From the NCBI GenBank assembly GCA_009103225.1, contig RHPI01002272.1, positions 13,451 through 77,450 of the forward strand: a stretch of 64,000 bases of DNA, given 5' to 3'. Below are positions 30,545 to 54,949 of this stretch, piece by piece. The position numbers and the translations under genes are program-made. This stretch comes from Chlorokybus atmophyticus. Taxonomy: Eukaryota; Plantae; Mesostigma and Chlorokybus algae. The notes beneath the pieces are model-generated. The model ran no database searches and had not been told where the DNA came from. It was given only the letters and a program-made list of their open reading frames with translations. Position 1 is the first letter of the stretch, and the number at the start of each line of letters is the position of its first letter.

Positions 30545-31345
30545 TCTGTGTTCATCAGCTACTGTCAGAAGGACAAGTCACATGCGCAACCTGACGTGCG
30601 AAACCTAGCGGACAGATTACAAGCCGATGGATTGCTGTGTCTTTGTGGACTACATGAATGACGGGACAGTGTCGTGGCCTGTCTTTGTCGGACAGATGCT
30701 GGAGGACAGACCAATGCGCGCACGTTGTTTAGTTGCACCATTGGCCAGCCCCGTGTGACCGCAATTGCATGCATGGTGTGTGGTGTACTTAAGTTGCTGA
30801 GATGCTGGGTTCAGGTCGTTGTTGCCTGTGACGAGCACTACAAATTTGATTCCCTCAAAGAGCCAGTCTTAGACAGCATCGACTTGCTGGGCAGGGGTAC
30901 TCCTGACGAGTACACCAACATCCTTTACAAGGTGTATGAGCAACAATATTGAACGGGCTGGCTGGTGCCAGTAAACTTTATGCCTCCTGGTGAGATAAGC
31001 CACGTCCCCAGCCAGATTGTCAAGTTCAGTTACTATTCCATCAATTGGCAGATTAAGGTGAGAGACAGGGTTTCCACTGTGACTGAGCTTGCTGGCTGAC
31101 TAAAGAGTACCTATCAGACGGCTCTAGTTGACCTGCCGATCAGCTCCCCTTGATGCTACGCATCAGCATGTGTGTGCTTACGCTGTATGTTCAAGTAGTT
31201 ATGAGCAGTACTTGATCAACACGCTTGCAGAACCCTGCTGACCAAAGGTACGACGACTTGCTGAAGCGCTTGCATAGTATCTCACCGTTTGTGACAGCAG
31301 CTGGAGCTACTGCCACGGGGCGCCGCCAGCTAGCACTGCTCTAAA
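30545..31345 (+). pseudogene. SEFIR (TIR-superfamily) domain, copy 1, three exons
   Basis: SVFISYCQKDKSH..VRNLADRLQADG..VFVDY..SWPVFVGQM | VVVACDEHY..GRGTPDEYTNILYKVYEQ..WLVPVNF..HVPSQI (exon 30815-31057) | NPADQRYDDLLKRL (from 31231). One frameshift and one TGA (30950). Confidence 0.75.
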
Positions 31346-31396
31346 CGACAGGTGATGGTTGTTACAGGCCTAAATGACAAAAAGAAGGTCGACGGA

Positions 31397-32248
31397 TGCA
31401 GCTGCTGATGGGATGGCAAGTGCTCGATCAGGCTTGTGTTTTGGTCCTTCACGTCGCAGTCAATGCACTGGCAGCAAGTGCGTAGCACCAGTACCAGTGC
31501 GTTCCTTGGAGTAACTGCTGATTGCTATGCACGAGTCGCCGATCTTCAGCAGCAGCTATCGCCAGCTCCTCGTCACAGGCGTACTTGTCAGTCAGAGAGT
31601 TGTTTGAAAACGAGGACATTCTCATCATCAATCTGTGGAGGGAGAGAGCTCAACCTGCAATGGACAGGCTTGTTGAGTTTTAAAACTCTTGCTCAGATTT
31701 CTACAGCAAATGTGCTCTCACCAATTGTGCTCTTACCAACAAGATGGCAGCCCTGAAGCGAAGCTCCTGCAGCTTATAAAAAACGCGCGCAGGTATGCGC
31801 CTATTGCGTTGCTTATAGCTACCTTGCCAGAGCACACACCCAGTGCGCACATCCACGTTTGCACAGCCTCTTTGTCGCCTATGACCGCCCCTTCACTTCC
31901 ATTGTGTACATGCAGGGTGGTCTATGACTTTTGGTACAAGGCATGAAATTGGTACACGACCAGGCTGCTGCCTGTGGATTTCTTAGCATCCGCAAGCATT
32001 GGGTTGGCAGAGGAAACGATTACAGACTGCTTGTGGAACCCATTGATATTGCAAATTATTACCGCCTGAAGCTGTGCGAGCAGTGGCGCGAAGGCAATCG
32101 TCATTACCTGGAGGCGAACAACCGTCCAGTTCAATACGTGTTTCTGGAACTTCGGTACGAGAAGTACAACCCAGGTAGCGTTGCACCCTCGTCAACGGAC
32201 CATGCGCTTCATGAAGCAGACGCGGTTGAGGCCAGCGCGCAGCTGTAG
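31397..32248 (+). pseudogene. EDS1/PAD4-type EP domain, copy 1, no lipase domain seen
   Basis: PAMDRLVEF*NSCSDFYSK, then NAR|RVVYDFWYK..HWVGRGNDYRLLVEPIDIANYYRLK..GNRHYLEANNRPVQY. GT-AG intron 31793-31915; stops and frameshifts present. Confidence 0.8.
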
Positions 32249-32354
32249 AGCTCGCATGCAAGCGCGTGCTCACTACAGCTATGGCAACCAGCAACGCTTC
32301 CAATTGCCATTTGGGTGAGTCACCTCGTACAGCTAGGTTGCAACTCTGAACACT

Positions 32355-35300
32355 TTACAAGGCGGATGGTAATGTACATACAGGACGGTATGCAGTAGAT
32401 GGTTGAAAAGCCAACAGAGGCTTAGCGCACTGCAATACTAGTGCAAACACCAGAAAACATTGCAGTTGCAGGGCTTGATGCAAAACAAAGTCATGCGCCA
32501 ACATGTCCACCATACCATTGTTGACAAGTATGATGTTGCTGGCTTCATGTATAACACATGTGTTCCAAGTTAGTGTGGACCCCAACTGTGTGCAAGTTTT
32601 TTGCGTCAACATGTCTACCTTATCACTGATATTGGAAGGCCTAAGCGCTTTGAGGCATGTAAGGCAGGCAGTGCAGGATGAATTACCCCATCTTTCCTGG
32701 GCGGCACAGCTGCCTGCGGATGAGGCAAACATGGTTCAAGCTTGTGCCTAGCAGCTTTGACAAACACCTGTCCAACTTTCTTAACACAATGTCGGGTTGT
32801 CCATTGGCGGCTTCAAACAGTAGCGTCTTGCACTGCCCTCTTGTTGACGACCTTGACTACGCTCTTCCTTGGCATGGAGTCCTTGGAAGGACTTCCGAGA
32901 TCAGCGTGTACAAGCCCCCCGCAACAACATGCCACTGCATCCTCATTGAACGATTGAGCATGATTGATTCTGTGTGACGCTGCAGCTGCAATCTCATACT
33001 GCAAAAGCACTAAAGCAGGGTATATAAAGCGCTTTCACTGTGTACAATGTGTGACAATGGCTGCAGCCATGAGAGCAACAATTGCCGTGCACGCAATACC
33101 GTACGGTAAGCATATGCATATCTGCAAGCTACAACTGCTTTCTCTGCACACTGGTATATATGTCAAGCTTGCTCAACTGAACTGCCAAGCCAACTGAAAA
33201 ATTTTCTGGAATTGGTGGAGGTGCACTAATGGACTTGACTAGTAGCTGAACTTTTCGGCAGGGCTTGTGGTCAGCTATGTAGAGGATTTCAGTAGGAGTA
33301 AAGCGCCCTGAGAATTTTCGATCTGTTTGGACATCAAGTGCAAACCACTCAGAGTTGCTATCTTCGTTTGCATTTGCATTCATAGATCCCCTCAACTCCC
33401 TGCATCAAACAAGCTAGGCTCAATTGTGTCACCTTCACCAAGCTCAGGCATACAATGCTTGGCCAACAACGTCTCAACCCACCAGCATGCAGGGTCGCGA
33501 TCGGGGCAGTCGTTCGCGCTGGTTACGCAGTAAGCTTCAACAACGTGCTCTTGGTCGTCCTTAAAAGTGTATGACAGCCAGCTACCTGTGTTGAAAGCAA
33601 ACTGGTCAAGACAATAAGAGCATAATGAAACGCGTGCAGCATTGTGTATGAACTTGAACTTATTGCTCTTGTCTGCACACGCATCACGTCAGCCACGTCA
33701 ACATGTGAGCTTGTCACTCACTCCAAGCCTCTCCAGTTCTGAAGGCAAGCCATTTGGTCTGGACATGGCCATCAAATGCGCAAATACCCAACTCATGCGG
33801 ACGCCTTTCACCCGAGCACTTCACCCACCCACCAGCTATGCGTGGGCCGAGCATTGCCAGCTGCTTCCAATGCTTGGCGCTGCCAACTTGTGTTGCTGTT
33901 TCTTCTACAATATCGAGCAAGCCTGGATGCACGTCTATAAGCCCTTATACACGTCACCCCGTCACATTAGTCATATGCATGCGCCAGCAATCACCGTTGA
34001 GTTCTTGCTTGTCGAGGATACCCTGGAAGACGTCAAGCCCTTCAACAAGGACCGTCAACGCGTCCACCGGTAAGGGCTTATGCTGCAACTGCTGCCGGCA
34101 AACTCTCACTTTCTCCTGCAATTCTTCAAGCCAGGTGCTAAGGGCCGCATCTGTGGTGTAGCGCCGAAGCTGCTTGTGCATTGCGTTCATAATGCAACTT
34201 GCGGCTTCATCGCAAGCCGGAAGTCTATCTGCTCAAGCCAGCAAAGGGTCAGCACCATCCCTGGTGCCATTGATGAGAGCAAATACAAAAGAGGCAAAGA
34301 ACAGTGACAACAGATGAGAGAAAATGATGCTGTTCCTACCTTTAGATTTCGCCATCTGGAACATTGTGGCAACTCGCCTGAAGTTGGTACTTGCTTCGCG
34401 CTCCAACTGCGCTTCCAGCTGGTGCCACACAAGCTTTTTGCAATTGCGAATATGTTCAGGCACCTTGAGTAAGTTATTCCCCCAAATCCGTAACTCCTCC
34501 AAATGTTGCAACGACAGCTCGGGTAGGTTGTTAAGCTTATTGGAATCCAACACCAGTTTCTTCAACTGTTGCAAGCGATTGACTTCTTGAGGTACCTCGA
34601 CCAGATCATTTTGTGACACATCCAGCACTTCAAGGTGATGCAGTTCCCACAGCTCATTGGCTGGCAATGATGCCAAACGAGTGTTGCACAGAATTAAATA
34701 GCGGAGGTCCTTCATCTTGCACACCTGTCAGGAAGCTGATGAGCGGCGCAGCATGGGAAGGAGGAAGGGGGCATATGCCCCCTATGCACTGATGCAGGAA
34801 AGATGCGCATTTACGACCAGCTGTTGCTCGTATGCCCCGACCTGCAGTATTGTTCATAGTACATTGCCAGCATTGCACGCCCCTCACCTGCTGTAACAAG
34901 CCTTCTGGGTTACAATCGACATCTATTGAGCGCCAATGCTTGAGCTTCGGGAGCTCCAAATTGGGAATGGCACGCAATTTGCTGCAGAAGTCCAAACTAA
35001 GGAAAAGCAGATGTGGCAGCTTTAAACAAACTACTGTGGGTGCTGTGAGGGATGTCAAGGAGACGCAATAAGCGAGATCCAACATCTGCAGCAGGCATGA
35101 GATCAGTGGCATACTTGCATGCATGCAGATGCGGGCAGTGAGAGAGCTGCACCTGCAGATTTGTAAACTTATTGATGTCCGGCAGGATGACAAGTCTACC
35201 GCAACGTGTCAACACCAGCGTTTGCAGTGAGGGCAGCTGCAGACAAAAAGAACCAGGACAGGGTGTAATTGAAGCTCTGCCAAGCACGAATAAGAATATT

Positions 35301-37180
35301 TCATTCCGTTTTGCAACTCACTTGGATATTTGCCTCTGCATCCCAGAGCTGCTCAAAACTGCCAAGGGACAAATCCAAAGCATAAAGTTTGTTGTATACT
35401 GCTGCTTCGATCACTTGCACGTTGCGCAGCATGTTCACTTGTAAGGATACCAAGTGCTGTGCACTGCCTTGTAGAACCAAGTATGAAGCACAGTTCACAG
35501 CCAGTAGCCGCAGGCCTGGCCCGAATTCATCTGGTGCAACCCGCTCACGATTGAGTTCGACCTGTATCTCCGAAAATTCGCCCTGCAGTTGACACTCAGC
35601 CTGTCTCAGTACTCTGGCCAATCTGAGGCCTTGACAACTTTCACAATCTCACTATGCTGTGCATGGCGCAATGCACTGTGACAGCAACACGGCGGTAAGC
35701 GACAGGAGCGCCTAGTCTGGACACATACAAAGTAATGTGCGGCACACCTGCTGAGGGATTCCGCTGACATGATGCAACGTCGAAGGTTGGAGACATGAAA
35801 GCTGTTGCGGGGCTACCGTCTTTTTCAATTGCGTTCCTAGAATCACTAGCAAATCATGCATCACCAACAATCTACCAGCTATCTCTGGGTGTTCTTCCAC
35901 ACTTATAAGGGAGCTCTCTTGGAGGTTGAGTAGCACACGAGGAATTCCCCTTCGAAGGTCTGCAAGATCTCCAGGGCTGGTCCAGATGTACACTCCAGCT
36001 CGATACCCGCTATAAGTGCGTAGAAACGGATAGCACGCCAGGTCTTGAAATGCATCACGTTCCTTGCTTCCAAGGCGGGTCAAGCTGAACTCAAGGATGC
36101 TGAATATGCCATCTTCCTTCTCACCATGTAAACTTTGCATTTCTGGTAGCCGCTCCAGATAGTGAAGAAACTCAACACGACTTTGATTACGCAGCGCACT
36201 TCCAATCACCTGAAGTGCCAGTGGCAGTCCACCGCACGCCTCCACAATGGATTTAACGACAGGTGCACATACTCGGAAGGACTGCCCGCGCTCACCTGCA
36301 GCGCATACGTGCTCATGCAGCTCGTTACAAAGGAAATAATCACTCAGGTTGAACTCGTCCGTACAAGCGTTGTAAATAATGCCAGCAAACTCGTCTTGTT
36401 CCTTGCGAGTGTGCTGCCGGTATGCATGTCTGCAGAACAGGGTGATAGCATCTAGTGGCCCTAAACACGACACTTGCAGAATTTCCACATTCCCCGGGTA
36501 CTCCAGCCACCTGCGCTCCCAGGAAGTGAGAATCACCTTGCTGCCTGCAGCCACGGGCACCAGCAAATAGTCCGCTTGCTCCTTGGTAGTGACATTATCC
36601 ACGACAAGCAGGACTTGCTCGTTTCTAAGGCGTTCTGTAAGTAACTGTCGTCCATCGCTCAAGTCGAGCCCAACATTGTCATCGGCAGGGGTCTTACAGA
36701 GGGCCCTCAGCATGGCTCGCTGCTGTTCCTTCAGTGCCACGGTGCTCTCTCCTGGATCAAGTGTGATGAAGCAGCTTCTTCCGCAATAGTCTGCGACAAA
36801 GTAATTGTACACATGCTTGGCTATGGTAGTTTTGCCCACACCTCGCATGCCAAGCAGTCCCACCACCGTGTGCGTTTCCAAACGCTTTATAACAGGTGCA
36901 GAGCGTGCATGGATGTCAACAGCCTCAACTGTAGCCACGGGCTTATGATGTATGCTCAGCTTTTGGCAAACCCAATGGACGACTTGTGTGGTGAGTTCCA
37001 CTTCATTCCTGCACATGCAACGATACCAGCAGATCACAAAACTGGAAGGATGCGAGATTTTGGGCACAGACATTGTTCGTACAACACAACAAACAGTACG
37101 CTGGCATACAGCAGTCCGATTCTAGCACCCAAAGCGTCAACTAGATGCCGCCAGCTCAGCAGCAAGCAACACAGACACAG

Positions 37181-37263
<83 letters not shown>

Positions 37264-38060
37264 CACTTGAACTCATTGCTTCTGATGCCTGGTATATCGA
37301 AAAGCTTTGCCATAGCCTGTAGCCAGTTTTTTCTTGTCTCCTCGTGCACCTGTTGCCCTTCTTCTATGGGTTGCTGTTTGATCAAGTCGAACTGCTGCTT
37401 CTGCAACTTTTCAAACCCGGTGAGTGGGGGGGTGGGGAGGGGGGTGGGGAGGGGGTGGGGTGGTTGTTCCTCGCTCCAGTAGAACACAGGTACGATGTTT
37501 TTGCTTTCGTTAATCGCTTTCACCAGCTCTGTTAGGCAGTCTATCGACTCCGAAAATCGCTGGGAGAGAATGACAACGACAACCTGTGCAGCGCTCAAGG
37601 CGTCCAACATACTTTGCTGCGCACTTGGGCTCCCTTTCAGATCATTGTCATCAAGAAAGGGTTTGATAGAGTAGTTGGTGCGTTTCAACGCCTCATAGAT
37701 ATACGAGGCGAATGTTCTCTTGGTGTCGGGTCCTCGATGGCATATGAACACATTCCACTGCACACACTCAGTCAGTGCTGAACAATACACAATGCGGTTG
37801 TCACACACACACACACGCGCAGGCGCAGGCGCACATATAAATGTATATAAGTGTATATGCATATAATGGAGCATTGGGTTCCTGTGTGACGAGCAATTTG
37901 AGACTGGTCGCGTCAGCGACACCATGTGACGCAAAGAGATACCCACACAATGCCCAATCACATGAGGAAGTCTCAGGGAGCTTACTGCGGGTGCCGGGTC
38001 TTTGAGATTGTCAATGCTACAACCTTCAGCAAGTGTACTGAGAGATCCCAATGAAGTCAT
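32355..38060 (-). CDS. TIR-NB-ARC-LRR (TNL) immune receptor 1 with extended C-terminal exons; some lesions likely, 3' boundary approximate
   Basis: TIR VFICHRGPDTKRTF..SIDCLTEL (37267-37777). NB-ARC P-loop GMRGVGKTT, LLVVDNV, GLPLAL, MHDLL (35712-37008). LRR exons about 33950-35620. Confidence 0.9.
37187..37260. repeat. (GA)n microsatellite in the TIR/NB-ARC intron
   Basis: Directly visible, next to the GTGAGT donor (minus strand) at 37261-37266. Confidence 0.95.
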
Positions 38061-39099
38061 GACTGCGGGCAAGCGGGCTAAACAGAGAACGACGTGGTAC
38101 TGTCCTCAGTGTGCCCGCACTGCTGCTTCACAAATCAACCCTGCGATTAGTTCGTGAAGAGGCGAGTGCCGAGATGAACTTCAATTACCCTCACATGCGA
38201 TATGGGCGGATATACAAGGCATCTATTAGTGGTCAACTTTTATGTCTGGCCGGCTGCATGCATGCAAGATATGCGATCAGCGATATGCACGTGTGCAAGG
38301 CGTCTGTTAGTGGGCGTCGATTCATGTCTGGCCGTCTGCATGCATGCATGCTCGCAGTGTACTCTGAATCAAAGAACGGATGTGACCGCATCCGCATAGT
38401 CATCGTGTATGCGCATTGAGCTAAGGCAGGTAGGGTCAGAGAAGCTGTGCCAAAGGCAGTGGCCAGTCACAAGGTCACTGTGCATTCTGGCATGGCAAGT
38501 ACGTACAGCTGCTAGGCGACGACCTCACGCCCGCCGCTGCCTGCCCACAGCAGCGAGGAGTGAGCCTCGCTGAGGTGCAAGAGCGACTCTGGACTGGCGG
38601 AAGAAGCAATCGCAAGCAGCGCTGCCAATCCGCTGGGCGTGGGGCGCAAGGAGGCCGGCACCGGCGGCCGCAACACCGGCAGCAGAGGCAATATCCGCCA
38701 ATCCTGGTCGGGGCAGTGGCCAGCGCGGCACAATATCTGATGCCATTTGGCTACACGTTCTGGGCTCCTGAGGTTCCTCTGACCCTTTTCCTCTGCGGTC
38801 GTACCACCATTCCAAACCACCTAGGTGTTCCTCTCGCACCGCCGACAAACTGCGAAGGGCACGTTTCAGGCCTGAAACGTGCCCTCCGCATTTGGTCGCG
38901 GTGTGAGAGGAACCGCTGGCGGTGGCGGCGGGGGCGGGCAATGTGGAGGGCGAGGGCGCGGGCACAAGACTAGCACAACATGCACCCAACACTGGCAGCC
39001 ATCTTCGCCCTGCAGCTCGCTTGCCTCTACTGCTTCCAGCAAGCAGAGTCAGTGATTGCATGTGCCCGGTGCGGGTCTCTCGTCTGCGACTCTCGCTAG

Positions 39100-40036: not shown

Positions 40037-41830
40037 NCCCCCCCCCCCCCCCCCCCCTGTCCGAATGCTGGTGCTAAAGCTGTTGCACACGAACACCACA
40101 TGCCAGCGCTTGGGGGCAGCTTTGGTTGCGGATTGCCAATACGCCTCCGCGACAATCTCCCCAAAAACAGGATGCAGCATCTATTCTGATGCAGGAACCT
40201 GCAGCTGCGCCCTGGGTCTGCTCCTCCCACAGCAACGCCAGTCAGCTCACCACCACCATCGTTATTGCCACCGGGCGGATTGCCAGGCAGGGCATTATAC
40301 TGTCATCTGCTATGCAACCATGTGTTCAACGGGCCAGTCAAAGCAGTATGCAGACACACAACTAAGGGCGTGAACATGTCTACGTCTGTTTGTACCACAC
40401 TGTGTGGTCGTCGTTGCGTCGGTCATCTTCTTGCAGTTGCTGCCCGCAACTGTGCAATGCATGCATGTGTTGAGAGACTCTGACTGGTTATAACGCAGGT
40501 TGGAAACTTGCGCTCAAAATAATTGCTAGTTTTGTTGGAGCATGTTTGGTGGTGGATGGGCTATGTTATTGACACAGCCTGCGAGCGTTCTGCCGCAGTC
40601 AAGGTATTATGCAACCAAACAGAGGCACTGCCACAGTATGGCATACGTTGCAAAATATGAATAGATCGTCGTGGTCAGGCTGTCAGATGTATACAAGTCT
40701 TGCGCATGGTTCCTTAGTACTCTCTGCGTGCATGTGAAAACTGCACAGTAATACACCCGCGTGCATGCAGAAAGTAGCTCGGTTCAATTGGGAAATAAAC
40801 ATGTGGCACAATCACAGGTTGTACAGGTCGTCGCTGGGAGGCGGTTAAAGTCAGACAGTTCGACCGCAGGTGAGCGAGTTGCGGCCATGATTATTATCAT
40901 TGTGCTGCTCTTACCGTTGAGCAGTGGTGGTGTATGCTCATGCGGGCATTGTAGCGGCTAGTCGCATGCATGCTTGCCTAGGAAATCAATAACACTGGCG
41001 ACAGTGCATCTGTGCACACATGTAGAGCCATGCTTGTTATGCATTCGCCAAATGCAGCATAAACTGTTGACAACTCATGTACTGCTGCTTGCAATTTGGA
41101 GCGAACAGTCTTGGTGTAGTGTCCTTCAGCGATACTGGGTCTAAAGCATATTGCATCAGTACAAACCAGCTTTGAGATCATCCTGTCCGCAGTGTTGCAC
41201 ACAGGTGATGATACGCTGGTACCAAGCGCGGTAAATGGTATTCATAACGGGGCTGAGCCTATTGATAGCACTACAACCGTTGCGGCTGCAGGCAACGCGC
41301 GTGTGGCAGAAAGAGCAACCCATCCCATTCTAGAATTTGAGGCCACGCATGCATCATCGGCGCCAGCAGGTGAGCTGCACTGCGCAGTTATGCTGCATAT
41401 GTTGCATGTACATCAAATGCAGGACATGCATGCGCATGCACATGTACACACAACACCTGCAGACAGATGTTACCACCTTGTGCATATGTTCTTTGGCTTG
41501 CAATTTTGTACATAGCATTTCAAGTCATGTGTGCTTTATTGCTCATGATGTTCCCCCAACTGAGTTGCACAGCCAGTGCAAAGTAAGATGAAGTGAGTCA
41601 AACTTCACATGGCATGCTAAGTTATTCGGTCTAGAATCGTAGAGTCGACTCCATCGCAAGGCATGCAAGTTGAATGTCACCGGTGCTGCGTGCAGGTGCA
41701 CCCACACCAGTTGCTGTTGGGCAACCTGCTGCTGCGGCGGCGGCGGCGGCGGCTCATGCCGTAGCCGGAACCTCAACCAGTGCGGCTGCAGCAGGGTGCC
41801 TTAACTTGGCGTTGTGTACATCTTGCTTAT
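39100..41830 (+). pseudogene. Unresolved multi-exon coding region upstream of SEFIR copy 2 (possible extracellular/TM part)
   Basis: Splice-bounded protein-like pieces, e.g. MWTAANTSQDIADYMTTCKHRWPDYHMLYLN|gtaagt, GPYNVINGGPNSFKVSLDEFLCANAL and an Ala-rich linker at 41695-41800. Hydrophobic stretches near 40390-40440 and 40885-40920. Confidence 0.35.
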
Positions 41831-41910
41831 TATGGCGTGCTGCAGACCCTGCACACCTAATGCTGTGACTCTGTTGCACTTCACTCTAACCCATGATGTT
41901 TTTTTTGTAG

Positions 41911-42597
41911 GCCGTCGAGTGTGCATACCTCTGTGTTTATCAGCTATTGTCAGACGGATCCAGAGCATAGAACGCGAGTGAGGCAGCTAGGAAGCAAGTT
42001 GCGAGACGGACGGTATCACGGTCATCGTTGACTACAAGCATGACGAATCATTGTCATGGCCTGATTTCATCATACAAATGGTGGCACCAGGGGTGAAGGT
42101 GGGCATGCACTATACATGTGCTCAACTCTGTTACTTGATTGAATGAGCAACACCCGTGATCGTCGGGTTTGCAGGTCATTGTTGCTTGTGATGAGCATTA
42201 TGCGAGACACTGTCAAGGCCAGCGACCGCCCGGGGTGGGCCCCACATTACCACTCCCCTCATCACCAGGTGAGGGGAGCGGTATTGGCGTTCGCATTGAG
42301 ATGAACCTTATTTCCAACAAGCTGTACGAGCAACCAAACAATGCTCGTTGGCTAGTGCCAGTGCTGTTCGTACCGCCTGGCAGAAGAAAGCACGTGCCAA
42401 GGCAAATTGCAATGTACGATCACGTCATCATAAAGTGGCAAGAGCAGGTCAGACGGAAGCACTGTTTGGGTGCTGCTTGTAAGGTGCTGATGTGACGCCA
42501 CTAATTTTTGACCCGCGCACCCGCTCATCAACTCTTACAATTTCAGGAGCTTGATGGGCAAGGTTAAAATCAATTATTGCGACGCTTTTCAGCCTAA
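41911..42597 (+). pseudogene. SEFIR domain, copy 2, three exons
   Basis: SVFISYCQTDPEHRTRVRQLGSKLR-DGITVIVDY..SWPDFIIQM (41911-42098) | VIVACDEHY..GIGVRIEMNLISNKLYEQPNNARWLVPVLF..HVPRQI (42175-42447) | ELDGQG*NQLLRRF. Intron positions match copy 1. Confidence 0.8.
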
Positions 42598-42919: not shown

Positions 42920-42959
<40 letters not shown>

Positions 42960-43558: not shown

Positions 43559-44260
43559 CTAACTACCTAAACGCCTCACCCACCTTAACAGCTTGCGAAG
43601 TGACGTTAGTGACTCCGCTTTATCATTGGAGAGCTGATGAGCCCGCTGCCTGAGGATATGATTGGGCTCCCGGGCCTCTCTCACCCCAGCAGTGACGAGC
43701 TCCTGCAATGCGTTGTTGATTGAGCTCTCTTGCCTCTCGGGGTACGCATTGCGGTATGCCTGCTCCAGCAGGTAATAACGCCGCGGCCGCACAACAGCCT
43801 CAGCAACCGAGAGACGAAGGTAATGCTTGCCGGTGGAGGCATAAAAATTCGCACCCTTTGGAGAATACCAGTTGGCAATGTCAATGGGCTCCACCAGCAA
43901 CCGATAGTTGTTGCCTCTTGCGAGCCAGTCGCTTGTGGAAGAAAGAATGTCCTCTGGGATGGAACCGCGCTCGTACTGCGTGGTAACCCAATCCCAAAAA
44001 TTCTTAAGTTTTACCCGAGCTTTCTCAATCTGCGGTGGCCGGTTCTATTTGAAGCCAACATAGTAGTCTTGTTCGTCCTGGTACTGCTTGATAACATCCA
44101 TCGCGTCATCAACACCATCGTACTTCATAGACAGCTCTGCTGCCTGCCTGTTTCGAGCATCTTCCCTGTTGCGCACAAAAGCATACAGTCCAAACAGGAA
44201 CCCGAGCAAGCCGACCAGACAGGCGAGGATGCTGGGCCAGGGAGGCGCTGGTTCAGCCAT
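43559..44260 (-). CDS. Transmembrane-anchored stand-alone EP-domain protein, copy 2 (intronless, one internal TAG at 44045-44047)
   Basis: MAEPAPPWPSILACLVGLLGFLFGLYAFV (TM)..DAMDVIKQYQDEQDYYVGFK*NRPPQIEKARVKLKNFWDWVTTQYERGSIPEDILSSTSDWLARGNNYRLLVEPIDIANWY..GKHYL..RPRRY. Confidence 0.85.
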
Positions 44261-47200
44261 CTGTTGGGTTGTAATAAGCCCCACGCGTGCATGCGCTCTT
44301 GCTCTTGCTCCTTCCCCTTTGTACAGCGGACTCGGGCACTGCGCATGCACGTGTTGATGTTCAGTTCACTGTTCAATTGATCCCCATTGCTTAGAGCGGA
44401 CATGTTGCAACACCCCGCAGCAGTGCAAACGCTCCTGCAACCAAAATTGATTGCAGACTTACTCAACGTGTGTAAGCTAAGCTGCCCCAAACCAAGCACC
44501 AGCCCAGCCAAGCTGTGGTGACTCGGACTGGCACGACTCAGTTCAGCTGGCGAGCATGATGGCAGCAACTGCTTACGGACATGTTTACAGCATGGCTAAC
44601 GGGAGCGCTCGCATTAAGCAACAGCAACAACATTACAAGTTTAAAAGCCAACTACTTGCTACAGCGGCCAGGGTGGAGCAAGAAACGCAAGCAGTACAGT
44701 GCTACGCCGGTATATGTGCATGCATGTAAGCCAGCGTGAGCAAGCTGTTGCACTGGTCGATACATAAACAGGCAGCACTGATGGCGTCTTGCACCTTCTA
44801 GCTAGCAAGCTAAACCAACCTCTCACCAGGTTTGAGCTTCAGGCTTCCTTGCTCCAGCAGCAACCTCTGGAGTTGAAGCCAACAGCTTCAGAGCAAGGAC
44901 AGCGCCTCCTTGCTGACCCAGCCAGCCAGCAACCTCGTCGGGCTACCGCAGCGCCCCTTCCTACAGGCGCAAGTTGCCCATACCCTTACCCCTTCAGCGC
45001 AACGGCAGCGTCGCCGCCCGTCGCCCCCTCCTCCCTCCCGCCCACAGCGTCAACAAGCTGGCTCAACTTAACGCGAGCATTCCATTTATGAGGGGTAGGA
45101 GAAAGTCTTGCGGCCAGCACTTGACTTCGTCTCATCGGCTGCATGCGACTTGAAACATGTCTCCGGGTCCAAAAGAACGAGATACCGGTAGGTTACAGAA
45201 TAGTGTCGTCTTCTGACAAAGTCTTTGTTACAACTTGCAGTATGGGCTCTGGTGTTTGGGTTTCAATGAGCGAGATGTTAAGACGCTATGCGACAGAGGA
45301 GACCTGAATGCCCGTGCACTATGTGCTAGAGATTGGCGGCGGAGTGGGTGGGGCGGAGCTGAGCCGTCATGCAGGCCGCTCTACCTACTGCTGGAGATAA
45401 GTGGTGCAAGCCGCTGACGGTTGGAGCAACTACGCCCTCCTCCCCGCCAGCCGGCTGCGCAGTGCAAAAGCTAGCGTTGGCTGCAAACACGGTGCGCTAT
45501 ACCTTCTGCTGTTGAGTAGGCTGCGCGTGTTTGCTGCTGTCGCACAACAAGTCTGCTTGGGCAGGGCAATCAGAAGTTACGTAGTACTCGAATAACGTGC
45601 TTTGCAATGGATAGCCAGCTGCAGCCAGTGTAGCAAGCTGGTTGCAGCTAGTTGCAACAATCAAGTAGGGTTGTTTGTGGTTCAGAAATATTGTCACTGA
45701 GCCGTGCTCCTGCAGACAAGGTTCTAAAAGTCATCGATGATCAATTCTTGTGACGCAGCGAGGTGTCTGCAGGTACGAGTGGCTTGACAATTGAAGATAG
45801 CAGTATCTGAAGGTAGGCATTGACGCGCCAAGTAGTAGTGATTAGTCCTCGTGATATAAATTCTGCACGACGCTGTCATGCCACTGCTTGCATTTCAGAC
45901 ACGTTGCTGACAACATAACAGCAGCCAGCTCGTTGCTGTCATGTTCTCCATCAGTCAAATCAATCCTGCGTTCCGCGGCCAGCATGCATGTTTGCGTGCA
46001 TTTTATGCTGCGTACGGGTATCTGCAACACGTCCTATTGCAGGTGAGTGGTAGGTGTTGGCAAGCAACTGCCTCGCATCTGCCACTACCTGCTCAACCAG
46101 TAATTTTTGCAAGAGCTTTGATCCACAAAACTGTGTCTGGACTCAAACACAGATTTGAAAAATCAGTTGTAAGCAGCCCCCCACTCCCAAGTAGCTGCCC
46201 TTGTGAATGCCGTGCTTGTAGTGGTGTATCTGACCCTGCTGAAGGTTAAGCCCTTTTGTCGTTGATATCACCTTGTGGATGTGTGGCTGCATCGGCTTCG
46301 TGGCTCTCGTGCGTGCGTGCGTGCGTGCGTGGAAACTGCAATTGTATGTGTGTCTGTGTGCGTGTGTGCGCGTGCGCGCATGAGCGCATGCGCGGACACA
46401 CGTGCGCGTCATGGTACATGCATGTAAACTACACAACAAGCGGGCACATCGCAGGGGTCGCCTTCCACCATTGCATCATCACTTGTCGTAGCCATTGTGT
46501 GACCAAGTACATGTACTAATGGCTTGATGTTAGCTATGGATGCACAACAGATCAGCAGCACTGCTACCAGTTGTACCAATCGCGCTGAAGTACAACTTAC
46601 ATCAGAGTGCAGAGGCTTTCTAACTGTTGTAATCATCACTTGCTGGGTCGTTGTTAAGCATGCACATTGTCATGGTAGACTAGTGATAGCACACAATCTG
46701 GTAAGCGTTCCATGAACACATCTACAAACCATCAGTCAACTGTACAGTCAACCACCTGCAGTAGTCATAGTCAACTTATACAGCACATTGCCATTAAAGC
46801 TAGTGTGAAATGATGATGCAATGGTTGCTATACTTGTGAGTTATAAACATACTTGGCTGACAACCACTCCAAGTGCACTTGCACACATGAGTCATGTGTC
46901 CACGTATGTGTCGAAACAGTTGTCTGCGAGTCAATTGTTACTGGTTGCCATTGAGACAGGTATTGTCTGCATGTGTAGCATGTGCAAGTTTACAGGCAAT
47001 AAGCAGCAATAACGTCTACATGTCACAATGCGGTGCTGGCTAAAGTAGAGTGACAATGCCGCAACAGCATAGCGACAACCGCAACGACCGAATCACACAT
47101 TCAGCCAGCCGTCTACCCACCTCAACACTCTTGTCACCAGCATTGCCACCATGTACCTGGGCTGCGCGGACCCGTGGCCCACCCGCACGACCACGCTCGC

Positions 47201-49199
47201 TCGCGTCTACCTCATCACGCATGAACCAGCGCGTGAGGCCTGCAGGTACACCCCCCTGCAACGTGTACACGTAATCTGCAGTTGTTAATGAATGCTGTTA
47301 CCCAAGTACGCATAGTATGTCATGTAGATAACACGCACTCGCACTCGCACATGCACAGTGTGTACTGGATGCGGTAGGTACAAGAGACTCCCACACGGTA
47401 CAAACGGCACAATGTGTGGCGGTAGTGCGTACAAGTCGCTTGTAACACTTGTAAGTGCAAGGCATCCTGTCCAGATTGATCAGTGACGATTAGGTTTACC
47501 GCAAGCAATAAGCCTACCGAAAATCTGGGATTGCATTTGTTTTATTGACAGTCGGCAACTTTGATTTACTGTGTACTTGACATTTGGGCTGTCATGTCGT
47601 GTGCATGCAGGCAGGTGCGCTAGTGTGAAATTAGCGCGCATGATTGTGCGTGCAAAAGGGCTGTGGTCGTGTACCAGGAGTGTGCGTAGATGTACCAAGA
47701 GAGACAGCAACAGATCAGGGTACAGCGGTGCGCATGCACGAGAACGCAGTAAAGTTCGGGGAGGGGGGAAGGAAAAAGGAAAAGGGGAGAGAAGAGCAAG
47801 GATGGTAGGGGCGGGGGAGAGAGAGAGATTGGACGACGGCAGGTTGACTTCTACTTACAAAGAAAAAAAGAAACAGTGGTTGCTACGCACCCAGCCTTTC
47901 ACCCACTGCCTCCGCCTCCTCCTCCTCCTCATGCGCCGCCGCCGCCGTTACCGAACCCTGCCTCGCTACCGGCCGGTGATGCAAGATTGAAGCGATTGAG
48001 AGCTCATCATCAGCTTGTCCTCGTTGGCGGGGGCGGCGGCAGCATCGTCGTCTTCGCCGTGCAGGCGTCATCGTCGCCTGTTGGGTGGCTGCCTCCAGCT
48101 CGGACATACCAACACAGAGGTTGGCTCCCACTCCGTCGCCTCTCCTGTGCGAATCATGCTCTCAATCCCACACTTGCAAGCATCCAGCTGCCTGTTTGGG
48201 TGTGGTTGAGCATGTGCGCATGTAAGGTGAATGTGTCGAGAATGCGTAACCGCGTGAGTACGAGCGCATGTGAGCATGCGCCAGTGTAAGTGCAACGTAA
48301 GTGTAAGAGCAAGAGTACATGTCTGTGACTATGTAGTTGAAGAACATGTGAACATGTATGTGCGAGACTGCATGTGTGGATGAGTGGTAGCGCTTCAGTT
48401 TAATTCAGTGGCTGTGCTTGTATAGGCTGTAGGGTTCAGCCTTTGTCAACACATGCAGAGTGTCGTGCTGTTGTTCTTTGTCCGCTGTCCAACAACCATA
48501 TCCGCATGCAGTTGACAGCACCCTTGAAAGTACCATGCTTGGTGTTGTAGTTGCTTTGGGAATGTAGTCTGTCTCAGTATTATACCCGATTCACTTGCTA
48601 GCATGGATGCAGCATGCGTAGTAAGCCACCCAACCATTGTTTTCTTTACAACAGGCAGCGCGGAGAGAGCCGCAGTGATATATGACGCAGGGATACAAAC
48701 CTTGCAGCATCCAGCATGGACTGAAGTAGCGTTCTCGTGCGCTCGGAACAGTTTTTATTCCTTCGCTGGTCATACTCAGTGTAGGCAGGCTGCCTACACC
48801 AACAAAGCTGGCTAGTGCGCATAGCCTCGCCTAGCAGCGACTGTAGCATCAGGCCATGATGCATGCCAAGCGGCTTGTCGCATAGCCTTACCCAACTAGG
48901 GATAGCTGTGCGGCAAATGGTTGGTTGCCTATGATAGGGGGCAATGTGGTTGCACACGCACGATCACATGGGGAGACTTGCCATCATGTATAGTATACGA
49001 CTGTAGGGTACAAGTGTAGACTACAAGTGTTGCTAGACAACGATACACTCGTCATTCATGTAAAGGATGGGACATGGTCCACCCTGTTTGGGGTGCAAGT
49101 GAATCAACCGAAGTTGTACATTTGGTACAATAAAAGCCAGCCAGCGCCCTATCCGTGCAGTCAAAATCTCTGTCAGCAAGGCAGGCTCTTGAAAAAGAG

Positions 49200-49900
49200 G
49201 CCTTTACAAACGCTGCCATTGTGCGCTGACCGATCTGCGGAGCAGCTGTCGCAATACACCTCGTCCAACAAGAACTCTATCCCCGCCAACACTGTGGGGC
49301 TCGCAGTACTCCACGAACCAGCACTTGCGGATGTTGGTATACGCCATCAGAAGGTACATCTGCGCAAGGTGGTGCGNNNNNNNNNNNNNNNNNNNNNNNN
49401 NNNNNNNNNNNNNNNNNNNNNNNNNNNNNNNNNNNNNNNNNNNNNNNNNNNNNNNNNNNNNNNNNNNNNNNNNNNNNNNNNNNNNNNNNNNNNNNNNNNN
49501 NNNNNNNNNNNNNNNNNNNNNNNNNNNNNNNNNNNNNNNNNNNNNNNNNNNNNNNNNNNNNNNNNNNNNNNNNNNNNNNNNNNNNNNNNNNNNNNNNNNN
49601 NNNNNNNNNNNNNNNNNNNNNNNNNNNNNNNNNNNNNNNGGGGGGCGTGGGGGCGTGTTATTCTGCCTGATCTTGCGGGTGAGTGGGCCATGCTTACCAG
49701 CAGGCAGATCCCATCGGGTAAAGCACTGATAGGTAGTCGCACTAAGGGTGTTTCAACGAGCAGAACTATTCGACCAACTTGTTGTAGTTTTGTACTATAG
49801 CCAGCCCGGGCATGTCAGTCAATCCTTGTGCAATCTTCGGATATAACGTTCCCAAGCACGATTAGCATGCAATGCTTCATTGCAATTGACGTCACCCTGG
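49200..49900 (-). pseudogene. Possible YqaJ/lambda-exonuclease-family PD-(D/E)xK nuclease fragment spanning an assembly gap
   Basis: AMKH..HARAGY..QQVG..PISALPDGI upstream of the gap and HHLAQMYLLMAYTNIRKCWFVEY downstream. The expected ExK motif would lie within the N-run. Confidence 0.4.
49377..49639. other. Assembly gap (N-run); a second gap is at 57212-57530
   Basis: Runs of n. Confidence 1.
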
Positions 49901-50049: not shown

Positions 50050-53000
50050 GCATGGAAGGCGCCTATCGCTCCTGTCTGTCTCAAAGGGCGTTCACCTCGT
50101 CGTACATGCCCTGCCTTTAAAGCGCCAGTGCCGGGTTGTCAGAAGAAGCTGTCGCCTTGTAGAGGCCAACGAGCCTAAGCTTTGCTTTGGAACTCGCCAG
50201 CACCCGTCGATGCAGGGCTGTGGCCTTGCCGAAGTCGTGATTTTGATCAATAGCAACTGCTATGCAATTGTCAAAAGCGTAGCCAACATGATGAGCCTTG
50301 GCGACGCTGCAAGATGTGCTCGCATCTGCGCAAATTGCTCTGCTCCTTGCAGCGTGGGAAGGCTACACAGCCCTCGACCACCCATTGGTGACCAAGAGAT
50401 GCGACTGCCATTGTAGTCAGAGCACCAAGCCCTGCCACCGGTGGTGTACCCAGCGATTGGGTGGGTCGCCTGACAAATAGCCAACACAGTCAGTACACCA
50501 GCAGCAGGTGCTTAACACCATAACCATCGCGTGCAGTGTCAGCAACATGTGTGTAGGTCGGTGTCTTAAAGTGGGTGTGCGTGTGTTGAGTGTCGTTTGC
50601 GAATCTGGATGTGCATGCAGATGTTTCAGTCAGCATGCATACTAGTATGTGTAAGTCGACCTACCAGAGTGGCTGCGTGCGTGAGCGCGTGTCAGCTTGT
50701 GTTGGAGAAGGTGTGTGCGCATGCGCGTGCTTGCATTGGTCGACGTACGCGTGTGCATACGGTGCCTGTGCCAGGCATAAAGCACAGTGTCCAGTCAGTC
50801 TGTAAGACTCGTTGCAGTACGCATATGTATGAACATGAGTAACTGTGCACAATGTGTGTACGCCACTTTGAGCAGCTGTGCGAAACGAGCATGTGTGTGT
50901 GGCCGCTCTTACCCTGGTACGGTGAGGGGCAACCATACCCTGCATTGCCTCACCCTCCTACATACCATTGCGCACATACCAGTGAGACAACATAAGGATT
51001 CTGGCAAAGCTGCCAAACCGCTGTACTGTAATTGCTTCCGTCCTGCTCCTGCAGCGCTGCGATTGCACTGGTAGATCAGTATAAAGCTGACGTTGAAGCA
51101 GACTTACTTCTCTCCTCCTCCTCTTCCGCCGCCTCCCGCTGGTGCTGCTGCAGCACAGCCACAACAACAGGAGCCAACCTACTGACAAATTACGGCAGCG
51201 ACGCCAAGTTGTTGCACCCGGGTTAGGTACGTATATTGCAGAGCAGCGAGGTTGCCAAAGGATTCCGGCAGCAATGCCAAGCTGACGCACCTGGTTAGGT
51301 CCACCCTTGCAGCGCAGCGAGGTTGCCGAAGGACTCCGGCAGCGATGCCAAGCGGTTGCAAGCGTTCAGGTCCAGCTCTTGCAGAGCAGCGAGCTTGCCG
51401 AAGGACTCCGGCAGCGACGCCAAGTTGTAGCACCACCTCAGGTCCAACTTTTTCAGAGCAGCGAGGTTGCCGAAGGACGCCGGCAGCGACGCCAAGTTGT
51501 CGCACCGACTCAGGTCCAACTTTTTCAGAGCAGCGAGGTTGCCGAAGGACGCCAGCAGCGACGCCAAGCTGTCGCACTCGCTCAGGTCCAGCTCTTGCAG
51601 AGCAGCGAGGTTGCCGAAGGACGCCGGCAGCGACGCCAAGCTGTCGCACTCGCTCAGGTCCAGCTCTTGCAGAGCAGCGAGGTTGCCGAAGGACGCCGGC
51701 AGCGACGCCAAGCTGTAGCACTCGCTCAGGTCCAGCTCTTGCAGAGCAGCGAGGTTGCCGAAGGACTCCGGCAGCGACGCCAAGCTGTGGTGGCACTCGC
51801 TCAGGTCCAACTTTTGCAGAGCAGCGAGGTTGCCGAAGGACTCCGGCAGCGACGCCAAGCTGTCGCAACACCTCAGGTGCAACTTTTGCAGAGCAGCGAG
51901 GTTGCCGAAGGACTCCGGCAGCCATGCCAAGTCGTAGCACCTGTTTAGGTTCAGATTTTGCAGAGCAGCGAGTTTGCCGAAGGACTCCCGTAGCGACGCC
52001 AAGCTCTGGCACTCGGCTAGGTGCAGCTCTTGCAGCTTAGCGAGTTTGCCGAAGGACTCCGGCAATGCCGCCAAGCTCTGGCACTCGGCTAGGTGCAGCT
52101 CTTGCAGCTTAGCGAGTTTGCCGAAGGACTCCGGCAATGCCGCCAAGCTTCTGCACCCACTCAGGTCCAGCGCTTGCAGCTCAGCAAGTTCACCAAAGGA
52201 TTCCGGCAGCGCCGCCAAGCTCGTGCACTGGCGCACGTCCAGCGTTTGCAGCTCAGCGAGTTTGCTGACAGACTCGGGGAGCATGCTCAAACGCCATGCA
52301 GTGAGATGCAGAGCCTGTAGCCTAGTAAGCTCGCCAAGCACAGGCACCTCCATTAGACGGTTCTGTCTGCGATTGCCAGTGGGGTAGACCCGCAGCTCCA
52401 GGACTTGCAGCTCCTTGAGGTTTCTTAAGAACTCAGTCCGCAGCCTTGTGACATTGAACTGTCTGGTGTTGATTACATGTACGATGAGGACGACCAATGT
52501 TGTGTGTGCAGCGGCATTGCATAAGAAATTGTTCAAGGCTGAACAGCTCGCACTTTTCCACTCCAGATATACCAGGTCTTTCAGAACCCACTTGGTCACG
52601 CAGAATGCTTTTTTAATTGAATGCACGAAAGAGTCGCACGCAGTAGTTGCACGCAAGAGTCGCACGCAGCAGCCTTCTTTCTTCCTTGTTTTTCTTTGTT
52701 GTTGGCACGCAAGAGTGTGAGTGTAAACTTCGCCATCCCAATCAATCGTACCAAGGTCCAGCATGCGGAGGCGAGGCATGAAGGCCATGCCTCGTAATGG
52801 TGGGCTGCTGTTGACACCAGTCCAGGACATAGTCTCGGCGTTGTCAAAGCCCTGCATGCAACAACAACAACCCAATGATCAGCAATACCCACGTGTTCAC
52901 TCCACCAGCATGTTGTAACACAATCCTAGAACGTCGTGAATTGCAAGTTCTCATCGGATGCATGCATGCAGCAATCCTTGACAGGCCAGTAGAAAGGGAC

Positions 53001-54949
53001 ATGAGGTGAAGGAACCAAGATGGAACGTGGGCATTGCAAGCACCTTCATGGATATGGCGCTCAATGCCTTTGGCGACCAGATGTGCCTGGGCGGGTTGGC
53101 ACAATCGGCAATCATTCGCCCCATGTCGCGAAGTTGGTCATGCACTGAAAGGATTGTAGCTTTGCCATAAGCCACAGTCCTATAACCACGCCGCTGCCAA
53201 GGTCCAATAGTGTGAATAGTGCGAATATCATCCTCCGGGTCTCCACTTAAGCGAACGAGGGACCACTCCACCAGGCAATTCAACGCATCTGACCCGCCCC
53301 ACGCTGGAAGCAGCATGTCCTTGCTCTTCCCCAATGCAAAGCAGCAGATATCCAAAAACACTTGCTGCGTCTCGGGTTGTAGATAGTCGTAGCTGAGCTT
53401 GAGCTTGTCCCAGAGCTTGTTGTCAGCTGTACCTGCCACTGCGGTTGCCTGCTGCAGTCGCCACAGTGCGTCTTTCCAAGCCTGCACATCACCCTTTCTG
53501 CGCGTGTGGAGAAAGGAGCCCACGACCTCCAGTGCAAGCGGCAGGCCCTCACACGCCTCGATGATATCTTCAACAATGGTCTTCAGATCTGCAGGCACTA
53601 CTTGCGATCTGAAGGCATGTTGACAGAACAGTTCTCTAGGGTACTGACCATTGAGTGGACCAACATCCTCCACCAACGTATGCTTCTCATGCCCCTTGAT
53701 TAAGTTGCAACTACGAGAGGTCACCAGCACACGACTGCCGGTACCAAGCAGAGGGCTGGCGTCGTCTAAACCGAAAGGACCAAGCAGGGCTGCTTCTTGA
53801 TCGTTACTCCAAATGTCATCAACAACGAGCAGCACCTTCTGCCCTTGCAAGCGTGCCTTGAGAGTTGCCTTTCCTTCAGCAATGGAGTTGAATTTATAAC
53901 TAGAGTTGGGACCACTCCCAAGCTGTTCAAGCATCTGCTGTTGCAGCTGTACCAGCCTCCCATTGTTTTGGCATGGTTCGTTTCCGACCTCTAGAAAGCA
54001 GCAGCTGCCAGCAAATGTGCTGCGCAGTTTATTGTAGATTGCCATTGCCAGCGTAGTCTTCCCAATGCCACCCATGCCCCATAGCCCTAGTAAGACGACC
54101 TTGCTTCCTCTGGTAGCAGCACTCAACTTCTCGAGTACAGCTTTAACGCGGCGATCGATGTCCACCGGGTTTGCGGCAACATCCAAAGGTGGGCGGTCCA
54201 ACGTTTCCAGCACGTCGTCCACCACTTTCTTGGCTAAACAAACCGGGTCACTGACAAACAATAGCAACCATCAGGAAACCACACATGACAACCTTAGTGG
54301 AGATGTTTCCCAGTGACACCTTACCCATTCTCAAGCCTCAGGCCCGTTTTTCCAAATGCTTTTGCGAGCGCATCACGGTATGCAGACTCATTCTGGATAT
54401 ATCGCTGCTGGCCACTCAGGCATGCGCTGAAAGCACAAAACGTGTTTGTAACCAGGAACGCAGCTGCCTGACTGACAAGTGACAGAGTGTAGGAAAGAAT
54501 GCTCACCTGCGTATACTTTGCTGAATTGTGACTTGTAGGCTGTCAAAGTCGTCATCGAAGAAGATGGGCTTGACGATGTTGGTTGGATTCTCCATCATGA
54601 TGCGCAGCTCTTCCAGGCAGTACCAGGAGTCCCCGTAGTTACGTGACAGAACAGGCATTCTGATGCAAGCGGACTGTACATTTTGGGTGATCACAGTCCA
54701 GGCTTCGTCCCCGGGCTGCAAGCTGAGCTCATCCACAAAGCAGGTCAAGTTCACTTGCTTCAGAAGGTGACTTAGAAAGTAAACGAAGTTCTTCTTGACG
54801 TCCCCTCTATGGCTCAAGAAAATGTCACTGCCAGGGCGAGGGATGGTCTTCGACGGAGTCCATTTGCCTGTGATGTCAACGTGTAAGTTGGTTGTCAGTG
54901 GACTCAAGGTGACTGTAGACAATGGCACTTGATGAATTGAAATCTGCAA
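50050..54949 (-). CDS. TIR-NB-ARC-LRR (TNL) immune receptor 2; last LRRs and post-LRR exons disrupted
   Basis: TIR DIFLSHRGDVKKNFV..SWYCLEEL (54503-54949). NB-ARC GMGGIGKTT, LLVVDDIW, VLVTSR, GLPLAL, VHDQLRDMGR (52951-54267). LRR ORF 51295-52875. Frameshifts and a TAA near 51190-51300. Confidence 0.95.
51240..52260 (-). repeat. About 14 tandem 72-bp (24-aa) LRR units, central ones nearly identical in DNA
   Basis: Unit LASLPESFGNLAALQELDLSECxS; DNA unit gccgaaggac.ccggcagcgacgccaagctg..gcactcgctcaggtccagctcttgcagagcagcgaggtt. Confidence 0.95.

Follow-up and report, generated by a model that had tools for sequence, protein, structure and literature searches.

A probable fast-turnover TNL cluster with decaying lipase-less EP genes in Chlorokybus atmophyticus, and the link of EP to TIR-type domains in green algae

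A 24-kb stretch of genomic DNA from the alga Chlorokybus atmophyticus, which lies at 30545-54949 of the window analysed here (64,000 nucleotides in all, to which all window coordinates refer), is very probably a fast-turnover NLR cluster in which two divergent TIR-NB-ARC-LRR (TNL) genes stand amid decaying copies of lipase-less EP genes. An initial annotation had read the stretch as a cluster of six immune genes, two each of the SEFIR, EP and TNL types, forming a functional module that resembles a defence island. All six domain units are indeed found where it had placed them. In particular, a motif scan returns exactly two EP cores (LVEPIDIA, at 32030-32053 on the plus strand and 43874-43897 on the minus strand) and exactly two SEFIR starts (VFISYC, at 30548 and 41933). 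The units do not, however, amount to six genes, as the first SEFIR and the first EP belong to one relic, while the second SEFIR gene (SEFIR2) and the second EP gene (TM-EP2) carry stops or frameshifts. A working module within these 24 kb is thus abandoned, all its SEFIR and EP units being disrupted, two of them with confirmation in RNA. What remains of the proposal is the association of TIR-family enzymes with EP at the level of the gene family, visible in Chlorokybus fusion proteins, in the stump of a former tail of TNL2 and beside EP genes of other algae. Predicted gene structures support a link of EP to TIR-type domains both at the family level and across species. Neutral evolution of the copies, the outcome with which the idea of a module had been contrasted, is what the local copies suggest, and not the EP family as a whole.

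The window is part of scaffold Chrsp114 of Chlorokybus atmophyticus JGI Chlat1, since window 45135-43113, read on the minus strand, matches the exons of the public gene model P0151 (Chrsp114S01650) with 100% identity. Chlat1 proteins were retrieved by means of a profile built from both window EP open reading frames (ORFs). The gathering threshold of Pfam PF18117, 23.1 bits, was taken as the cut-off for EP, and 23 bits on PF08357 as that for SEFIR. RNA evidence consists of assembler contigs from three runs, covering window 40600-46500.

The two TNL genes

Both TNL genes are encoded on the minus strand. TNL1 (34236..38105) comprises a TIR domain at 37266-38105, an NB-ARC domain at 35715-37121 and LRRs at 34236-35648, which score 57 (TIR), 79 (NB-ARC) and 48 (LRR_14) bits in Pfam, and its P-loop reads GMRGVGKT (36828-36851). 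In TNL2 (51295..54961) the corresponding domains lie at 54506-54961 (TIR_2, 48 bits), 52954-54270 (NB-ARC, 104 bits) and 51298-52875 (LRR_14, 210 bits), and the P-loop at 54055-54078 reads GMGGIGKT. When aligned to solved structures, the motifs CLTEL of TNL1 (37524-37538) and CLEEL of TNL2 (54605-54619) fall on WCLMEL of the flax L6 TIR, which we take to hold the catalytic Glu, and the earlier statement that both TIR domains keep this residue is upheld. Each of the two genes thus presents a TIR with the Glu motif, an NB-ARC with a P-loop and LRRs, in this order and on one strand. TNL2 is made up of three large open exons and a small one, up to an ORF stop at 51295-51297. The large exons of both genes are open, TNL2 ending at a frameshifted LRR unit, and TNL1 and TNL2 are predicted to be likely intact. 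RNA runs contain 31-62% of the words sampled from window 30400-36400.

The NB-ARC domains of TNL1 and TNL2 are only about 26% identical, and the two genes are therefore old paralogues. Together with the 42% identity between the two EP copies, this confirms the earlier view that the cluster did not arise by one recent duplication. Among named proteins, the NB-ARC of TNL2 comes closest to land-plant TNLs designated 'TMV resistance protein N-like' (about 33% identity), and the search with this domain returned no Chlat1 model within the length range allowed.

TNL2 is followed by a decayed 3' tail (50165..51307, minus strand), which was recognised by translation and tblastn. Past the stop at 51295, one further LRR unit continues in another frame (51203-51307), and at about 51019-51100 there is a stop-bearing stump, 'LASLP-stop-FVSRLAPVVVAVLQQHQ', which contains '...VVAVLQQHQ...'. 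The stump is homologous to the linker that precedes SEFIR in P0006, an LRR-SEFIR-EP model also located on Chrsp114, whose residues 73-372 align to window 51996-51019, so that TNL2 was formerly a TNL-SEFIR-EP gene. Window 50165-50263 is similar, in turn, to exon 1 of P0153, a SEFIR-EP model (residues 2-34, 61%, E 3e-7). The SEFIR-EP tail of TNL2 has been lost or is possibly hidden in an assembly gap of 263 N (49377..49639). The gap adjoins no recognisable ORF or domain on either side and, although it could hide the missing tail, no claim made here needs reading across it.

A piece of this tail has been duplicated. Window 1..1113 on the minus strand is 75.3% identical over 1190 nt to 50200-51363 (self-blastn) and consists of LRR units (922-1113) and downstream sequence only, with neither NB-ARC nor TIR beside it. 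The further TNL remnant reported at the window start is therefore derived from a TNL as proposed, but as a copy of an LRR tail rather than of a whole gene.

Decay of the SEFIR and EP genes

The first SEFIR and EP units are joined in a single SEFIR-EP fusion relic, SEFIR1-EP1 (30545..32245, plus strand), which was delimited by tblastn with P0004, an intact SEFIR-EP protein of 415 aa. Residues 68-415 of P0004 are colinear with window 30545-32239 on the plus strand, and three in-frame stops lie inside the aligned segments (TGA at 30950-30952, TAA at 31681-31683 and TGA at 31944-31946). There are in addition at least two frameshifts, within 30609-30658 (near 30635) and within 31979-32009 (near 31990), which are called as such because the segments in different frames overlap in their coordinates and leave no room for introns. 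Near 30700, the splice donor has apparently been lost at the exon end expected from P0002 and P0004. The EP part remains recognisable, the ORF at 31931-32248 scoring 35.3 bits on PF18117. SEFIR1-EP1 is an old pseudogene, of one gene and not of two. With the C-terminal part of P0002, a model from scaffold Chrsp5, the relic shares 74-82% identity, and a related copy has therefore been dispersed. The adjacency of SEFIR and EP, which had been described as occurring twice, dissolves with this structure: the first instance is the relic of one fused gene, and the second consists of two separate, convergent transcripts.

SEFIR2 (40523..42828, plus strand), the first of these transcripts, is spliced and expressed, as documented by contigs from the three RNA runs. 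Its first exon ends at about 40603 and is followed by exons at 40818-40869, 41292-41369, 41696-41795, 41911-42098, 42175-42447 and 42547-42828 or beyond. Five GT..AG introns are seen in the RNA-covered stretch, and we infer a sixth, at about 40604-40817, from a contig end matching 40572-40601. Over exon 41910-42096 RNA and genome agree with 0 differences and 0 gaps, and a +1 frameshift within 41991-42028 (near 42005) is present in the RNA. The message, with a likely start at 40556, runs through an Ala/Pro-rich linker into 'SVFISYCQ...KLRDG' and then falls out of frame. The upstream ORF terminates in RYHGHR-stop and the downstream +1 SEFIR frame in ELDGQG-stop. The conserved GTHDEYTN stretch has been lost, and SEFIR2 contains no EP domain, its +1 frame stopping soon past the last splice. 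SEFIR2 is a transcribed, frameshifted and EP-less remnant.

TM-EP2 (43326..45013, minus strand), defined by RNA contigs and by alignment to P0001, encodes a membrane anchor and an EP domain and is truncated by a stop. It has an intron at 44339-44826 (splice 44338/44827), a start ATG at 44263-44261, a TAG at 44045-44047 and a poly(A) site at 43326, where the RNA contigs show a T21 loose end. The ORF supported by RNA comprises 71 aa, that is, a membrane helix and a short tail without EP, and past the TAG the EP frame (43562-44044) meets no further stop for 161 codons. A single aligned segment, at 88% identity, is obtained with the intact paralogue P0001 (Chrsp114S01653, 258 aa), which has a Lys at the position of the TAG. 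When compared with outgroups, the window EP2 has 2 lineage-specific changes and P0001 has 3. The window copy is thus no more derived than its intact paralogue, and the nonsense mutation is therefore young. Variant RNA contigs encode the P0001 differences P-to-Q and T-to-N at 43833 and 43860, so the intact paralogue is expressed too. The public model P0151 hides the stop. It skips the TAG by a 15-nt GT..AG 'intron' (44033-44047) and adds a 3' exon at 43113-43178, neither of which is supported by the RNA contigs. Indeed, those over 43952-44099 run through the TAG with 0 differences and without the 15-nt splice, and the splice 44338/44827 seen in RNA conflicts with the model's N-terminal extension. 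As a young nonsense allele, TM-EP2 can only encode a 71-aa membrane stub.

The abundance of these two messages raises the question of whether their truncated products might be functional, the 71-aa stub from TM-EP2, for instance, or the N-terminal piece of SEFIR2 acting as a decoy or as a dominant-negative regulator of intact paralogues. Both genes are strongly represented in the RNA contigs, and the TM-EP2 stop lies in the last exon, where a stop should spare the transcript from nonsense-mediated decay. Such a role is nevertheless a speculation that we regard as highly improbable, as neither selection on the truncated forms nor conserved homologues of them are in evidence.

Several observations weigh against the picture of a decaying cluster. 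TM-EP2 is highly expressed, otherwise well conserved and open in its EP frame for those 161 codons; it might be read through, or its stop might have arisen very recently, possibly in this strain only. A +1 shift is needed in SEFIR1 and in SEFIR2 alike, within one homologous region of 40-50 nt. RNA contigs drop rare variants, so that a minor intact allele is possible. The lesions of SEFIR1-EP1 and the gene models of TNL1 and TNL2 lie outside the RNA-covered stretch and were read from the assembly, and the LRR part of TNL1 is spread over three frames, by introns or by frameshifts.

Some of these points would suit a defence module that still works, in which SEFIR and EP genes cooperate with the TNL genes next to them, its lesions being assembly errors or being bypassed by recoding, namely by readthrough of the TAG and by a +1 frameshift. 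SEFIR2 and TM-EP2 give well-expressed, spliced messages, the EP frame of the latter is open and no more derived than that of P0001, and each of the two SEFIR copies calls for a +1 shift in the homologous region. Independent RNA assemblies, on the other hand, reproduce the TAG and the SEFIR2 frameshift exactly. SEFIR1-EP1 bears at least five lesions of three kinds, and SEFIR2, besides its frameshift, is also without GTHDEYTN and EP. The two shift sites bear no resemblance to known +1 sites, and in P0004, P0152 and P0006 the frame is continuous there. The context of the stop, AAA TAG AAC CGG, also differs from what we take to be the readthrough context. A programmed +1 frameshift or TAG readthrough was accordingly judged unlikely from the site context, the RNA and the intact paralogues, and a working module rescued in this way is very unlikely. 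The shift in both SEFIR1 and SEFIR2 is tentatively explained as a coincidence in a lesion-rich relic; it can be placed only within 38-50 nt in each copy, a resolution at which a shared ancestral frameshift and a coincidence look the same.

Identity of the EP and SEFIR domains

The assignment of the EP domains holds, by Pfam score together with the match of a predicted fold to EDS1, PAD4 and SAG101. On PF18117 the Chlorokybus proteins P0001, P0151 and P0004 score 55.6, 49.6 and 39.6 bits, respectively, and the short EP2 piece alone scores 17.1, below the cut-off. The EP matches cover profile positions about 10-122 of 211, short of the full-length domain. The EP profile search gave 169 matches, which include seed-plant proteins of 600-690 aa. 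P0025, the one long match that was checked, consists of Lipase_3 plus EP, as in seed-plant EDS1. An alignment of 36 sequences displays the common signature FWD...W...YRxLVEPxDIANYYR...HYL...RPxRY. An AlphaFold2 model of the window EP2 ORF has a pLDDT of 87.1. In VIA-align, the nine best matches of this model are all EP domains of EDS1, PAD4 or SAG101 (Z 6.7-8.8, 22-27% identity over 116-130 residues), compared with a Z of at most 4.2 for unrelated chains. The Foldseek E-values of the same model, 0.28 or more, are not significant alone.

The residues of EDS1 that contact pRib-ADP are D469, N472, Y473, K478, T482 and R493 (bioRxiv 10.1101/2022.04.01.486681). The equivalents of D469 and N472, that is, the Asp and Asn of EPxDIAN, are kept in both EP1 and EP2, and the position of Y473 is occupied by Y in EP1 and by W in EP2. 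R493 has its equivalent in the R of EP2 (RPRRY), the corresponding residue of EP1 being Q (RPVQY). Across the family, this Arg is kept only in the membrane-anchored EP subfamily, and Tyr or Gln is found in the SEFIR-EP subfamily. K478 and T482 are not alignable with confidence. Neither the window nor the Chlorokybus EP proteins scanned contain Lipase_3 or an EDS1-like lipase.

As for SEFIR, P0004 scores 41 bits on PF08357, and P0004 and P0152 reach 74-79 bits on the PADLOC profile bSEFIR. TIR_2 scores nearly as well as SEFIR on P0004. The window pieces are tied to SEFIR through P0004 (tblastn E 5e-29 for SEFIR1 and 2e-15 for SEFIR2) and, for SEFIR2, through a bSEFIR match of 17 bits (E 8e-4). 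Positions 37-285 of bSEFIR align to residues 63-367 of P0004, past SEFIR and up to the EP core, which is probably an alignment run-on. The EP-only P0001 does not match bSEFIR, and the long alignment is therefore not taken to show that EP derives from bacterial SEFIR proteins, although their C-terminal part may conceivably be related to EP.

EP genes elsewhere in Chlorokybus and in other green algae

Annotated EP proteins of Chlorokybus are found on at least nine scaffolds. The family has two main forms, one in which a bacterial-type SEFIR precedes EP, a pair that in some cases forms the tail of a TNL, and one in which a single membrane helix is followed by EP. Six models join EP to SEFIR (P0004, P0152, P0153 and P0005), to LRR-SEFIR (P0006) or to TIR (P0002). 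In P0005 and P0153 the SEFIR is partial and recognised by similarity to P0004 only, without a Pfam SEFIR match.

Nine EP loci from other assemblies were scanned with one panel of TIR, NB-ARC and SEFIR queries, and five of them have TIR and/or NB-ARC within 10 kb of EP. A lipase-less EP stands near a TIR-NB-ARC gene in ENA ERZ19610909, near a TIR ORF in GCA_030012885.1 and between two TIR-NB-ARC genes, one on each side, in [Myrmecia] bisecta, within 10 kb in all three. In JGI 3300060285 it is accompanied by two TNL-type genes (one of them a full TNL by Pfam) and a TIR-only ORF. The fifth locus, contig NODE_514 of ENA ERZ22854972 (L006, 5088-11069), carries an EP-TIR fusion resembling P0002. This gene, at 9753-11069, is 37-43% identical to its Chlorokybus counterpart and stands head-to-head with a lipase-like-EP gene, with 1.6 kb between them. 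As a rough estimate, proximity to TIR or NB-ARC by chance would be about 1-9% per locus, if each genome is assumed to have from some tens to a few hundred of these genes.

These data bear on a reading in which the co-location has no functional meaning and neutral SEFIR-EP or TM-EP fragments have been spread by segmental duplication or transposable elements into a region rich in repeats in which TNL genes lie by chance. The window offers several features in its favour, in that the local EP and SEFIR copies are pseudogenes, that of SEFIR1-EP1 has a copy appended to the P0002 gene model on Chrsp5, the window start carries a duplicate of the TNL2 tail, and a Ty3/gypsy element lies at 22267-25037. 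Such a spread does not account for the intact annotated proteins, encoded on at least five scaffolds, in which EP is covalently fused to SEFIR, TIR or LRR-SEFIR, nor for the TNL2 tail, by which such a fusion formerly existed at this very locus. The proximity of EP to TIR or NB-ARC in the other algae is, moreover, far above chance under the rough assumptions made. We therefore consider co-location without meaning unlikely.

EP is also found together with a lipase-like part in chlorophytes. Two loci, in the trebouxiophyte Elliptochloris bilobata (L003; GCA_040144335.1, JALJOU010000074.1, 6966-10577, plus strand) and in L006 (8375 to 5088, minus strand), contain five colinear pieces with matches to the EDS1-family proteins of seed plants, which extend from the GHSLGG elbow as far as the EP core. 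Among solved structures, the second lipase piece matches EDS1, PAD4 and SAG101 only (E 4.9e-11 in L006 and 1.5e-7 in L003). For the L006 exon 7516-7764, all significant structure matches are EDS1, PAD4 or SAG101, and PAD4 and EDS1 are the best for the L003 lipase piece 7628-7780. GenBank splits the Elliptochloris gene into two models, one of 213 aa and KAK9825429.1, and the region 6966-10577 likely represents a single lipase-like-plus-EP gene. Lipase-less EP proteins are annotated in chlorophytes as well (KAK9825429.1 of Elliptochloris bilobata and KAK9811796.1 of [Myrmecia] bisecta). With genes for a lipase-like part and a short EP present in both Elliptochloris bilobata and the L006 contig, the lipase-less state of Chlorokybus need not predate the union of lipase and EP, and the suggestion that the module might be older than that fusion in seed plants is not borne out. 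An EP protein is also annotated in the brown-alga assembly of Ascophyllum nodosum (GCA_964200345.2, CAM9723916.1), on a contig that is either brown-algal or from an associated green alga.

A possible signalling role and its relation to known systems

In the literature searched, EP proteins and robust EP homology are held to be restricted to seed plants. No paper among those searched combines SEFIR with EDS1, the Chlorokybus genome paper makes no mention of EDS1, PAD4 or NLR-type immune genes, and none of the top-ranked papers retrieved for EDS1/PAD4 with trebouxiophyte or lichen-alga terms mentions EDS1 or PAD4. Against this background, EP might have been associated with TIR-type immune enzymes since ancient times throughout the green algae, rather than being an invention of seed plants, and the Chrsp114 cluster might be a decaying piece of such a system. 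We put this forward tentatively, with a little less than even confidence. If it were true, the logic by which EDS1 relays signals from TIR to EP would predate land plants, which bears on the open question of the route by which TIR receptors signal where a plant or alga has no EDS1.

The following mechanism can be proposed. TNL1 and TNL2 are probably still TIR NADase receptors. In the intact members of the family, the TIR or SEFIR enzyme would probably make a nucleotide-derived signal, which EP would probably read or relay, either in cis in the fusions or from a neighbouring gene. The reading of a signal by EP is proposed because its fusion or adjacency to TIR-type domains recurs and because the Asp, Asn and Tyr/Trp of EPxDIANY, at positions that contact pRib-ADP in Arabidopsis EDS1, are kept.

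The algal domain shares with the EP of seed-plant EDS1, PAD4 and SAG101 the helical fold, the signature motif with its Asp/Asn and Tyr or Trp and, in the membrane-anchored subfamily including EP2, the equivalent of R493. It differs from them in Chlorokybus by being short and without a lipase, and in carrying a membrane helix, SEFIR, TIR or TNL instead. The likeness to the bSEFIR anti-phage protein lies in the profile scores of P0004 and P0152, in the VFISY start and in a VxVACDEHY strand; the Chlorokybus gene is, in contrast, eukaryotic, intron-containing and fused to EP, the window copies are broken, and its NADase activity is putative. A likeness in working only can be drawn to TIR with EDS1-PAD4 or EDS1-SAG101 and to Thoeris ThsB-ThsA, where a TIR-type enzyme is genetically coupled to a partner that binds a small molecule. 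Unlike in these pairs of signal and sensor, the algal coupling is often a covalent fusion.

At the level of the locus, divergent paralogues, truncated duplicates and pseudogenes side by side recall the birth-and-death TNL clusters of plants, although Chlorokybus is among the streptophyte algae most distant from land plants. TNL2, with its former extra C-terminal module, can also be compared with NLRs that have integrated domains, the difference being that the module is here SEFIR-EP, a putative signalling pair, and not a decoy of an effector target. The locus itself is mostly a graveyard and unsuited to functional tests, for which the intact paralogues P0001, P0004 and P0002 and the neighbouring TNL-SEFIR-EP gene are suited. 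What it adds is the former SEFIR-EP tail on a TNL and the correction of a public gene model that hides a stop. It has also led to the observation that EP genes have TIR or NLR neighbours in several green algae that are unrelated, and to the lipase-like-EP genes of chlorophytes, both of which bear on the origin of the EDS1 pathway.

Other features of the window

A nuclease-like gene had been placed beside TNL2. The Pfam scan of ten ORFs between TM-EP2 and TNL2 gave no such domain across 45.2-50.7 kb, and this gene is dropped. Pfam scans of the other large ORFs of the window returned nothing beyond the Ty3/gypsy element. Window 45327-46127 (plus strand) is a spliced transcript, with a GT..AG intron at 45491-45771 that is present in the three RNA runs, and it is without a recognisable protein domain.

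Two further pieces of EP genes were noted. At 48790..48931 on the plus strand there may be a remnant, in two frames, of the C-terminal end of an EP gene with a membrane anchor, of the P0003/P0007 type; with tblastn E-values of 0.057-0.37 and translations inspected by eye, it is a weak lead only. At 57805..57918, also on the plus strand, tblastn detects an orphan N-terminal exon-like stretch with a hydrophobic helix, of the P0004 SEFIR-EP type (71% identity to residues 1-38 of P0004, E 1e-11). It sits directly after an assembly gap at 57212-57530, and a motif scan found no SEFIR or EP downstream of it to the window end. The Ty3/gypsy-type element at 22267-25037 (plus strand) encodes reverse transcriptase and RNase H, and its 611-aa ORF also matches a C-5 cytosine DNA methylase, with 39 bits.

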